A stretch of DNA of 64,000 bases from Oculina patagonica. Lineage: Eukaryota. The stretch spans positions 24,180,001 through 24,244,000 of the forward strand of contig NC_135761.1 of assembly GCF_052425735.1 (NCBI RefSeq), given 5' to 3'. Position numbers and translations under genes: made by a program. The stretch's first letter is position 1, and the number at the start of each line of letters is the position of its first letter. Positions 5,323 to 36,569 of this stretch are shown one piece after another. The notes under the pieces were generated by a model. It was not told where the DNA came from. It saw nothing but the letters and a program-made list of their open reading frames with translations, and did not search any database.

Positions 5323-7064
5323 TTAACAGCACCAACCAGACGCTTGTTGTGTTGTATTTGCTTCCAGCCTTACACTTTGTCGAGCAGATTGGACTCTTTC
5401 ATTAATTTACACAGCGCTTGGCCTCTCGTTTGCGTTGTACAATAAGGCATCAAGAGTGACTTTTCGTTGGGAAGTTGTTACATTCGTGTAAAGCGAAAAT
5501 GTAACTTTGGCATTTGGGTTTCTTGCCATGGCGTACCCAAGACCAACTTTCCCTTCCCAACCAAGGCTGACGAAGACACCGTAAAACCGCTTTCCGCCAA
5601 GCACAATGAAATCCCGCTCAAGGATTGCGAAAAACAGCGTACCAAGGGAAAATACGTCAGCTTTTTCAGGGTAATGGCCAGCGAAAAACTCTGGAGCCAC
5701 CCAGTGTATGGGGCCAATTCCTGAGCTCATGTAGTATTGTGTGTAACTGGTCAGCCATGAACCGTCTTCAGCGTTGGTTCGTTTGAGTGCGGTGTACTCG
5801 CGAGCAAGACCAAAATCAGCCAACTTCACATCCCCCATTGCGGTCAAAAGGACATTATCCGCCTTTAAATCGCGGTGAACCACACCGCGTGAGTGGAGAT
5901 GGGCAAGAGCTTCGGCAATTTGACTCATCCACTTCATATTCGTTTCTGTACTACTCGTCGGGGGTGGAAGAGGAATAATGAATAATGAATAACGGGCTAA
6001 AACAGATAAGGAATATTTAAGGTTCAATGCTTGGAATAATGAATAAGTCATTTCCAGTAAAGGAATAATGAATAGTGGTTATTCACCGTGCTCAAACATT
6101 ATCTTTTATCTTCAGACCAAAGAGAGGGTGGGACACTCAAAATAATTAATTGTATGATGGGCATCTAAAATAGTGCAACACTTTTACCAGAATGTCTAAA
6201 ATAGCGTTTCTGGGGTTCAAAAAATGAAAATTTTCCCGGGGGAGCATGCCCCCGGACCCCCCTACTTTGTTATGTATCAGGCAGCATCAAGTCCATCCCA
6301 ATAACTATCTGGTTGCAAACAATTAAAGCTGACCCACTGTTATCGACACAGTGACAATCACGTCCCATCAATACACTACAGTATTTTTGTTATCACTTTA
6401 AACCGCAATTTTGTGTGATATTCGAAATTTAGCTTGATATGTTGTCATTTTTTGCGTGGAGGGGGGTCATAAAAAAATTAGGATTTACGAAGGGGGGCAG
6501 GGTAAAAATCTCTGATAACGAAGGAGGGCAAACGCATTTTTCAGGCACTGTCGTTCAAATTCTACCCCCATGATCCCATACAAAATGAAGGTTTACTTTA
6601 TTTAGGCAATAGGGAATAATGAATAACAAGAAAAGTCTGAAAATGAATAATGAATAAGTCGTGAAAAATGTGAAGGAATAATGAATAAGTCAGTTCCAAT
6701 AATTCCTCTTCCACCCCCGATACTCGCTCGATCAAGACACTCGTTTAAACTTCCGCCCGAGCAGTACTCAGTCAAAAGCAGCATGTGTACGCGCGCCTTG
6801 TGTATCACGGAACTGATCTGCTCCTATGATGGCGATCACATTCTCGTGGAAGATTTTGTTCAGTGTTGTAGCCTCGCGGATAGCATTACGAAGCGCCGAG
6901 GCATTCCAACAAAGAACATCTTTTAATGCGTAGACTGTGGAACTTGCCTCGTCTTTTACTTTGTATACGACACCAAAAGCGCCATTGCCAAGTCGCTGCT
7001 GGATTCTAACTGTTTTGTTTCCAACGGAAACTCTTGATGGAAGATTTACAGTGGCCTGTTGTAT
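5323..7064 (-). pseudogene. Type-A STK35/PDIK1L-like kinase pseudogene
   Basis: Paralog of 31553-32536 with start ATG>ATA (7062-7064), +4 frameshift near 6790, MITE insertion 5958-6720 and premature TAA at 5407; original GWCC-stop at 5323. Confidence 0.9.
5958..6720. mobile_element. Non-autonomous TIR element (763 bp) inserted in the kinase CDS
   Basis: 19-bp TIR TCGGGGGTGGAAGAGGAAT; 6-bp TSD TACTCG (5952-5957, 6721-6726); empty site in the paralog at ~32197; AATAATGAATA subterminal repeats. Confidence 0.9.
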
Positions 7065-34685: not shown

Positions 34686-35631
34686 TTAACAGCACCAACC
34701 AGACGCTTGTGGTGTTGTATTTGCTTCCAGCCTTACACTTTCTCGAACAGTTTGGACTCTTTCGTAAACTTCCTCAGCGCTTGGCCTGTCTTTTGCGTTG
34801 TACGATAAGGCATCAAGAGTGACTCTTCGTTGGGAAGTCGATCCTTGAGTCTCAGGCGAAAACTTAACTTTGGCATTTGGATTGCTGGACATGGCGTACC
34901 CCAGACCAACTTTGTCCCAACCAAGGCTAAAAAAGGCACCGTAATACGGCTTTTCTTCGAAAATGACGTAATCCCTTTCCAGAATTGCAAAGAAGATCAC
35001 TCCAAGTGAAAATACGTCCGCCTTTCCAATGTGGTGTCCGCTGAATACCTCAGGAGCAATCCAGAATGGTGTGCCAGCCAATGTGTTCATGTAGTACTGT
35101 TTGTAGAACGTCAACCACTCGTTCACGGGATCTGCGCGCTTGAGTGCGATATATTTTCGTGCCAGACCGAAGTCCACCAACTTTACATCTTCATTGTTTG
35201 TAAGCAGCAAATTTTCTGGTTTTAGATCACGGTGAACCATGCCATTCTTGTGGAGGTACCTCAGAGCATCTGCAGTTTGACTCATCCACTTCAGGTTCAT
35301 CTCGTCGCTGCTTCGTCGTGTTAAGCGCTCGTTTAGACTTCCACCGGCACACAACTCAGTTAAAATCAGAAAGTGTCTTGTGCCAGATATTTCTCTAACC
35401 GTGTCAACGCCTAGGATGGTGATAATGTTGTTGTGGTTGACTACTTGGGCGAGATTCTTGGCCTCACTAACAGCATTACTAAGACTACTTTCGTTTTCAC
35501 GACGAATGTCCTTTAGAGCGAACACTTCCGAGCTAGCTTCGTCTTTGACTTTGTACACGACACCATGCAAACGCGCCTTTTCCGAGTGTCTTCTGAACCG
35601 TTAAGCGTCTCTCCCCAACCTGAACTTGTTG
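34686..35631 (-). pseudogene. Type-B kinase lacking its own ATG and promoter, joined to the tail of the upstream kinase; +4 frameshift in the Gly-rich loop
   Basis: QQVQVGERRLTVQKTLGKGAF, then a 4-bp insertion (35565-35568), then open to GWCC-stop at 34686. Confidence 0.8.
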
Positions 35632-35654
35632 GAGCCTTATTGCTTGGCGAATGT

Positions 35655-36569
35655 TCATGACTTGAGCGCTCCCTCTTGAGCGCTTGGTCGATCATTTGGG
35701 TTGTACTGCAAGGTCTCGAGAGCGACTCTTTGCAGAGCGTTGGACCCTTGTGCATAGCTTGAGAATGCAATTCGGATACGGCGATCAACCTCTTCCATTG
35801 CAAGCCCAAGGCCAATTTTGCCTACACCAGGAATATCTACAAAGGCACCGTAAATTGCTTTCCCAGCAATCACGATGACATCCCTCTCAAGGATTGCGAA
35901 AAACAGCGTACCAAGGGAAAAAATATCGGCTTTTTCTGTGTAATGGCCAGTGAAAAATTCAGGTGCCATCCAGTGTATGGGGCCAATTCCTGAGCTCATG
36001 TAGTATTGCTTGTAAGTGGTCAACCATGAACCGTCGTCTTGTTGAGCGTAGGATCGTTGTGTGAGTGCGGTGTATTCGCGAGCAAGACCAAAATCAGCCA
36101 ACTTTGCATCCTCCGTTGCGGTTAGAAGCACATTATCCGCCTTCAAATCGCGGTGAACCACACCGCGTGAGTGGAGATGGGCAAGAGCTGCGGCTATTTG
36201 ACTTATCCACTTCAAATTCATTTCTCCACTACTCGGTCGAGCAAGGCGCTCGTTTAAACTTCCGCCCGAGCAGTACTTAGTCAAAAGCAGCATGTGTACG
36301 CCTTGTGTATCACGGAACTGATCTGCTCCCATGATGGCGATCACATTCTCGTGGAAGATTTTGTTTAGTGTTGTAGCCTCGCGGATAGCATTACGAAGCG
36401 CCGAGGCATTCAAACAAAGAACATCTTTTAATGCGTAGTCTGTGGAACTTTCCTCGTCTTTTACTTTGTAGACGACACCAAAAGCGCCATTGCCAAGTCG
36501 CCGTAGGATTCTAACTGTTTTGTTTCCAACTGAAACTCTTGATGGCAGATTTACAGCGGCCTGCTGCAT
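35655..36569 (-). CDS. Type-A' STK35/PDIK1L-like kinase, complete catalytic domain, tail lost by a late frameshift
   Basis: ATG at 36569; all kinase motifs present; GIGPIHWMAPE; ends RPSAQEGALKS* with no CC tail. Confidence 0.75.
   Translation of the reverse strand: MQQAAVNLPSRVSVGNKTVRILRRLGNGAFGVVYKVKDEESSTDYALKDVLCLNASALRNAIREATTLNKIFHENVIAIMGADQFRDTQGVHMLLLTKYCSGGSLNERLARPSSGEMNLKWISQIAAALAHLHSRGVVHRDLKADNVLLTATEDAKLADFGLAREYTALTQRSYAQQDDGSWLTTYKQYYMSSGIGPIHWMAPEFFTGHYTEKADIFSLGTLFFAILERDVIVIAGKAIYGAFVDIPGVGKIGLGLAMEEVDRRIRIAFSSYAQGSNALQRVALETLQYNPNDRPSAQEGALKS

Follow-up and report, generated by a model that had tools for sequence, protein, structure and literature searches.

Could two neighbouring kinase genes be joined, end to head, into one gene for a two-kinase protein, and what has become of such a gene since? 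This question is raised by a locus of the coral Oculina patagonica, at positions 34,686 to 36,569 of a 64,000-nucleotide (nt) stretch of DNA (contig NC_135761.1 of assembly GCF_052425735.1, positions 24,180,001 to 24,244,000), which is called the window here. The locus is read on the minus strand and consists of an A'-type kinase gene followed by a B-type kinase (B2). The initial annotation had regarded it as a hidden tandem-kinase fusion, created by a deletion and then broken by two small frameshifts. Based on the reading frames, on the undeleted gene pair of a relative and on a second assembly, we put the probability that the locus is a young, lineage-specific gene fusion, now a null allele, at roughly 0.8.

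The fused reading frame and its origin

Three-frame translation displays how the two genes are connected. The A' frame runs from 36569 to ...NDRPSAQEGALKS and ends in TGA at 35657-35655, and the neighbouring frame reads ...AQVMNIRQAIRLQQVQVGERRLTVQKTLGKGAF, then a stop. The first frame reopens at 35564 (GVVYKVKD...) and runs for 292 codons to ASGWCC, with its stop at 34688-34686. The A' domain is complete, with the Lys, HRD, DFG, APE, catalytic Asn and Gly-rich loop all kept, and its best solved sequence match is GCN2. The catalytic motifs of B2 are intact as well, but the shifted frame encodes its Gly-rich loop, which is cut by a 4-nt insertion. Both match the Pfam Pkinase profile (PF00069) far above its curated cut-off of 31.7 bits (A', 150 bits, E = 1e-43; B2, 152 bits, E = 2e-44).

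The last residues of the A' gene, VMNIRQAIRL, are the same as in the REL_337 tail and differ by one residue from the tail of L002, an intact A'-type paralogue about 0.5 kb beyond the window start, which ends PSAQKVYDKVMNIRRAIRLQHGQRDSSSTGECC. The A' gene of a relative (ERZ25067872) ends PSAQEVYDKVMNIRQAIRLHGQQ...SCC (tail ...PSAQEVYDKVMNIRQAIRLHGQQGSPGSGSCC). Since the tails of L002 and of the relative match, VMNIRQAIRL is the real A' tail in its real frame. At once after the CTC codon of this tail (35632|35631) comes CAA CAA GTT CAG..., namely the B gene from codon 2 onward (QQVQVGERRL...), and neither spacer, promoter nor start codon is present between the A' tail and B2. The CAACA shared by tail and head has the same codon phase in both, so that the frame is kept across the joint. 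The microhomology is 5 nt long if the ancestral tail was like that of L002, and 2 nt if it was like the relative's. With the two lesions removed, the fused frame would comprise 1881 - 4 + 1 = 1878 nt, that is, 626 codons.

How the joint arose can be read from the relative, which keeps the unfused state: an A' gene, a spacer of about 2.2 kb and a B gene. Its A' gene (337 amino acids, aa) has 87.9% DNA identity to window 36589-35630, and its B gene (P0007), 2.15 kb downstream of A', has 85.4% DNA identity to window 35631-34470. Both alignments break off at the joint to the base, leaving about 2196 nt of the relative unmatched in the window. The fusion is therefore a young deletion, and the joint, with its 2-5 nt of shared bases and with both flanks colinear with the undeleted reference, is that of a microhomology-mediated event. 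The deletion, of about 2.2 kb, joined the A'-type tail to codon 2 of the next B-type gene, taking with it the last ~10 A' codons with the Cys-Cys end, the A' stop, the spacer, and the promoter, 5' untranslated region (5'UTR) and ATG of the B gene. The in-frame joint would have specified one protein of 626 residues, with two catalytically complete kinase domains and a linker of about 8 residues. Two small indels, no more than 62 nt from the joint, now break this frame.

The junction occurs once in the 529-Mb assembly, and no other two-domain locus was found in the coral's own genome. Over window 39569-35029, a second GenBank assembly, GCA_044670265.1 (L013), shows 1 mismatch in 4541 nt and no gap, the joint and both lesions included, and encodes an identical 304-aa A' product. 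In addition, short-read contigs of run X1 (organism A) and of run X2 (a coral metagenome of a different study) agree with the window letter for letter over 35347-35747. An exact search of metagenomes of the Joint Genome Institute with a 20-nt junction pattern gave 0 matches, which is uninformative for this species.

What the initial annotation had read from the letters alone stands throughout: the A' tail running straight into the B kinase without intergenic DNA or a B start codon, a repaired double kinase of about 630 aa ending in GWCC, an origin by deletion, and, closely, a microhomology given there as caacaag (here CAACA). The features of the locus and of its neighbours are listed in Table 1.

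Table 1. Features of the fused locus and of neighbouring kinase genes (positions in the window)
Feature	Position	Strand	Remarks
A'-type kinase, present reading	35655..36569	-	304 codons; ATG 36569; ends PSAQEGALKS-stop, not in the ~30-residue tail with C-terminal Cys-Cys
True A' tail remnant, VMNIRQAIRL	35632..35661	-	readable in the shifted frame only
Deletion joint, microhomology CAACA	35627..35631	-	common to A' tail (CTC CAA CAT) and B head (ATG CAA CAA)
B2 head from codon 2, QQVQVGERRLTVQKTLGKGAF	35569..35631	-	in the frame of the A' tail; matches B1 head at 60/63 nt
B2 kinase body	34686..35564	-	292 open codons to ASGWCC and stop; without own start, Gly-rich loop or promoter
Lesion 1, 11-nt patch against 12 nt in relatives (-1 frameshift)	35662..35672	-	from alignments
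Lesion 2, 4-nt insertion (+1 frameshift)	35565..35568	-	in Gly-rich loop of domain 2, GKGAF^GVVY, against four B heads
STAT/GAS-type palindrome TTCTCGGAA	36639..36647	-	~70 nt upstream of A' ATG; pattern scan
B1 kinase gene	38760-37801	-	
Gene A kinase	32536-31553	-	
B3 kinase gene	9065-8103	-	

The two lesions and the history of the frame

Both lesions were already noted in the initial annotation and agree with the alignments. In lesion 1, AGCGCTC is copied from 14 nt upstream, and this gives rise to a 10-nt direct repeat AGCGCTCAAG (35684-35675 and 35670-35661) as well as an 8-nt palindrome GAGCGCTC. The patch is a locally templated replacement, and it would sit in the last helix of kinase domain 1, as placed by the structure model of a related protein, P0001 (see below). 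For the 4-nt insertion, which stands out against the four B heads, no local template of at least 7 nt was found. Compared with the relative's genes, these two are the only frame-breaking indels in about 1.9 kb of coding DNA, the other three being in-frame 3-nt changes, and neither lies in a homopolymer.

Then, was this frame ever open? Contigs from two further organisms bear on this point. A 141-nt contig of organism C (record 28) can be placed at 35491-35635 with 1 mismatch; four letters are missing from it in one block, and it extends 4 nt past the joint. Organism B is represented by a contig with 98.4% identity, which follows the window from 35915 down to 35672; there its last two letters misfit, exactly where the patch begins. 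Thin as they are, these contigs suggest that each lesion is lacking in a sister species. Searches with the B2 and A' pieces returned no near-identical protein of a sister species (none above 83% besides the genome's own), and consequently what is known of the locus in these two organisms comes from the contigs alone. B2 itself has no further stop or frameshift in 292 codons. In its own lineage it has gathered 12 nonsynonymous and 6 synonymous changes, fewer than the intact B1 (29:16) and P0007 (19:12) and hence without extra decay, but such counts are too small to separate a recent pseudogene from a constrained gene. On this evidence, the fusion may have come first and both lesions later in this species, although that order is weakly founded, and we consider the chance that this fusion was once an open frame to be somewhat better than even.

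The most serious alternative is that the fusion was born dead: one error-prone break repair would have made the deletion, the patch and the insertion together, and the frame would never have been open. All three changes lie within 108 nt and include the sole two frameshifts in the ~1.9 kb of coding DNA; moreover, the patch is locally templated with flanking microhomology and the joint has microhomology too. Templated patches and microhomology at the joint are hallmarks of microhomology- or polymerase-theta-type end joining. However, the organism C contig appears to carry the joint without the 4-nt insertion and the organism B contig appears to be without the patch. The changes are also not at the joint itself, the patch being 31-45 nt and the insertion about 60 nt away, and the insertion has no detectable template. 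We therefore regard a stillborn fusion as unlikely, though well worth considering.

Several points weigh against our main reading of the locus, or against the strength of its support. Both frameshifts lie within 62 nt of the joint, for which uniform, independent placement gives about p = 0.004; this closeness hints at a link with the deletion, and the frameshifts may have come with it. The evidence from sister species comes down to 2 and 4 terminal letters of short contigs, one of which has a depth of 2.5. The individual behind the window may also have supplied the second assembly and run X1, and the confirmations are counted as at least two samples, not four. Gene conversion within the array can distort trees and orthology. 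Finally, the 'RNA' labels of the runs are guesses, and no claim on expression is drawn from the runs.

Intact double-kinase genes in other corals

The initial annotation had suggested that intact alleles may exist, and that coral proteins be searched for two consecutive kinase domains. The search was done with a query of 368 residues, long enough to admit candidates of 626 residues, and double-kinase open reading frames (ORFs) ranked top. At least seven full-length A'-B ORFs of 621-627 aa, here called the P0001 type, were found in several assemblies of the European Nucleotide Archive (P0001, 626 aa; P0002, 627 aa; P0004, 621 aa; cluster members P0339, P0340, P0343 and P0344), all with the junction NI[RT]PTKRMELF. 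P0001 and P0002 are uninterrupted ORFs in genomic contigs. Most ORFs of this type have every catalytic motif in both domains, while P0004, P0009 and P0356 are degenerate. There are also two full-length A'-A' fusions, P0005 (620 aa) and P0006 (591 aa), and a more distant double-kinase ORF, P0027 (569 aa). Two domains in a single ORF are thus present in P0001, P0339, P0340, P0002, P0343, P0344, P0004, P0005 and P0006. Intact A'-B genes do exist in other corals, then, but they are not alleles or orthologues of the window's fusion, and they have other junctions.

Between P0001 and P0002, the ratio of nonsynonymous to synonymous substitution rates (dN/dS) is 0.26 in domain 1 and 0.39 in domain 2, with 82 nonsynonymous and 70 synonymous differences against the ~3:1 expected without constraint. 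The P0001-type fusion, both of whose domains are canonical, is therefore under purifying selection. In an AlphaFold2 model of P0001, both domains fold, with a mean predicted local distance difference test score (pLDDT) of 83; their mutual orientation is not confident, the predicted template modelling score (pTM) being 0.53. Around the linker, the model shows a helix at 296-305, then residues 308-311 at low confidence and a strand that begins at 314, which leaves about 8 poorly ordered residues between the domains. As a separate observation, residues 230-252 and 532-554 are modelled as a four-stranded beta insert in each C-lobe (...ERDFIVIDGEAIYGAFV...GKLGLG...), which does not belong to the standard kinase fold.

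Could the window's gene then be a decayed orthologue of the P0001-type tandem kinase, descended from one ancient fusion? The two have the same domain order, the same predicted length (626) and the same residue count between VMNIR and VGER, and the DNA of P0001 is colinear with the window across the joint at 80.3% identity. Nevertheless, the junctions differ. In the P0001 type, the 18 nt after ...AACATT match the B 5'UTR plus ATG at 13/18 positions and the A' tail at 7-8/18; this match, beginning at -18, implies that the B start codon was retained (RPTKR-M-ELF). In the window, by contrast, the tail is kept up to CTC and joined to codon 2. The trees agree with this difference: B2 groups with B1 and P0007 (98/95), whereas the second domains of the P0001 type form a clade of their own, and forcing B2 into one clade with them costs 134.8 units of log likelihood (approximately unbiased test, p = 2.4e-9). 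Furthermore, when A' and B2 are compared in stretches of 30 codons, none is nearer to the P0001 type than to the local paralogues, and a closer relative still has the unfused pair. Gene conversion is evident in the array, A' being 93% identical to gene A over the first 105 codons and the B2 head 95% identical to B1; trees alone are consequently weak evidence here, while the anatomy of the junctions is independent of them. A single ancient fusion is thus very improbable.

The equal length of the two kinds of protein has its own explanation. The 18 nt before the B start codon (CGACCRGTGACAACAATG; window 38778-38761 and 9083-9066; L011 9983-10000) agree with the last 18 nt of the A' tail (35649-35632) at 9/18 positions and are of equal length, which is why the products of the two different junctions are equally long.

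The intact P0001-type genes thus formed independently of the window's fusion. The A'-A' fusions, with their joint at IRQ|AAV, and P0027 represent two more events, P0027 being the fourth. Besides the window's case, in-frame end-to-head fusion of neighbouring paralogues has accordingly occurred at least three times among these coral kinases, at least four in total. Regarding the A'-A' ORFs, P0005, P0006 and P0352 come from other coral assemblies, have 591-620 aa and are joined ...VMNIRQ|AAVNL..., where the A' tail meets an A-type head at its codon 3-4 through a Gln-Ala microhomology, in an event distinct from the A'-B ones. A library of representative proteins lacks the P0001 type, and many of its proteins at 30-40% identity contain 2 to 15 kinase stretches (P0125, P0136, P0145, P0161, P0183, P0199, P0211, P0250, P0254 and others); these may be natural multi-kinase proteins or merged gene models of arrays.

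Present state, the kinase array and known systems

What does the locus make at present? Presumably only the 304-residue A' kinase would be produced, from the retained A' promoter and without the putative lipid-anchor Cys-Cys tail, and B2 would be an untranslated passenger. A' stays an open 304-codon gene with a promoter element and intact motifs, although its last helix is altered and its Cys-Cys tail is gone; its dN/dS against the relative's A' gene is 0.25. B2 is a relic that has lost start codon, Gly-rich loop and promoter. B2 and the fused frame are a non-processed pseudogene, the lesions being confirmed in independent data, and A' alone is open.

One could still suppose that a small intron or ribosomal frameshifting across 35565-35672 yields a two-kinase protein, since the shifts of -1 and +4 add up to +3, which puts both kinase bodies in one frame, and B2 has no further stops in its 292 codons. 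But the shared frame, read through, meets three stops between the lesions, so that the window does not contain the one uninterrupted ORF of a tandem kinase protein. Inspection by eye revealed no credible donor/acceptor pair, leaving out the stretch would deprive domain 2 of its Gly-rich loop as well, and no joint across 35565-35672 occurs in any run. We give very little credence to a working two-kinase product. The least credible explanation of all is that an assembly error produced the junction or the frameshifts: arrays of tandem paralogues collapse easily and long-read assemblies often have small indels, but this explanation is ruled out, as far as the present data go, by the second assembly and the contigs of two runs from two studies, which carry the same sequence, and by indels that lie outside homopolymers.

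The window contains intronless kinase genes in tandem, each of about 320 codons and all on the minus strand, in the order B1, A', B2, A, then B3 and fragments. The nearest named database relatives of A' and B2 are coral matches (Acropora, Montipora) with 48-67% identity and only the automatic names PDIK1L/STK35; the label PDIK1L/STK35-like rests on these names, the tree holding no human references. A pattern scan of the whole window found 23 TTCYNRGAA palindromes against 7.4 expected, a count reached by 0/100 shuffles. Each intact kinase start is preceded, at a distance of 70-100 nt, by one such palindrome (36639, 38859, 32606 and 9159), and none of the STAT/GAS type (GAS, gamma-activated site) was found in the scan between 36569 and 34686. 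With no palindrome between the A' start and the B2 end, B2 would be transcribable only from the A' promoter, and the palindrome upstream of A' is the sole such element available to the whole fused unit.

Other members of the array have their own histories. Gene A is a mosaic, with its first ~235 codons of A type (up to 93% identical to A') and its last third and tail EANTTQQASGWCC of B type; in the last third the identity to A' drops to 44-62%. This pattern points to an older recombination or conversion between A and B types, and an apparent joint 34838/35867 in run X5 is probably a contig of such an A/B mosaic gene. Window 5407-6051 is an A-type kinase fragment without N-lobe, whose tail has a stop (PSAV-stop) where the paralogues continue, and is a decayed member. 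In the relative ERZ25067872, intact genes enclose two short fragments of kinases (L010 4526-6011), and the gene order (B, fragments, A', A', B, ..., A') is unlike the window's. The difference in gene order indicates that the array turns over quickly.

What gives the locus its interest is the birth of a two-domain gene with an unusually clear history: the undeleted state in a relative, a joint resolved to the base and a visible later breakage. That the copy in the window is itself a pseudogene limits its weight. A wider view would see here a recurrent, selectively retained fusion route to dual-active tandem kinases, in a STAT-regulated, fast-evolving and possibly immune array, convergent with plant resistance proteins, with the window's fusion intact in a sister Oculina. 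We consider this doubtful; if it were true, the O. patagonica allele would be a natural knockout for testing function. Should the coral proteins prove functional, they would be an animal counterpart to the plant tandem-kinase immune proteins, and the broken allele could then be compared directly with alleles of sister species that are possibly intact.

Then, how do these fusions compare with known systems? In plants, duplication or fusion of kinase genes has repeatedly given rise to tandem kinase proteins, which are thus polyphyletic (PMC6170490). Like the coral fusions, proteins such as WTK1/Yr15 and RPG1 have two kinase domains in one polypeptide, no other domain and repeated origins. However, their domains are of the RLK/Pelle type, usually a kinase and a pseudokinase, with a role in disease resistance, whereas the coral fusions consist of PDIK1L/STK35-like animal domains, both canonical in most intact copies, and have a C-terminal Cys motif. 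The coral genes thus lack the RLK/Pelle domains and the kinase-pseudokinase pair that define the plant family. The analogy drawn by the initial annotation holds for the architecture and ends there, as nothing bears on immunity.

Among animals, two kinase domains occur in the JAKs, RSK/MSK, GCN2 and obscurin/SPEG, which are ancient, fixed architectures with dissimilar domains, long linkers and extra modules. The coral fusions also have two kinase-fold domains on one chain, but these derive from neighbouring paralogues that diverged recently, with about 8 residues between them, and the fusion events are young and lineage-specific. The PDIK1L/STK35 Ser/Thr kinases are single-domain proteins, and the coral genes are a large intronless tandem expansion with Cys-Cys tails. 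Haemoglobin Lepore and the CYP11B1/B2 chimeras are deletion fusions of tandem paralogues at homologous positions, which leave one hybrid domain. As in these, a deletion in an array has joined two paralogues into one transcription unit under the upstream promoter; unlike them, the coral joint is end to head, through a few bases of microhomology, and both whole domains are kept. A literature search in a library of 8.4 million papers found nothing on such tandem-kinase fusions in cnidarians. The coral case is set apart by young and repeated end-to-head fusions of neighbouring paralogues, in a coral-specific expansion, with canonical domains and a very short linker.

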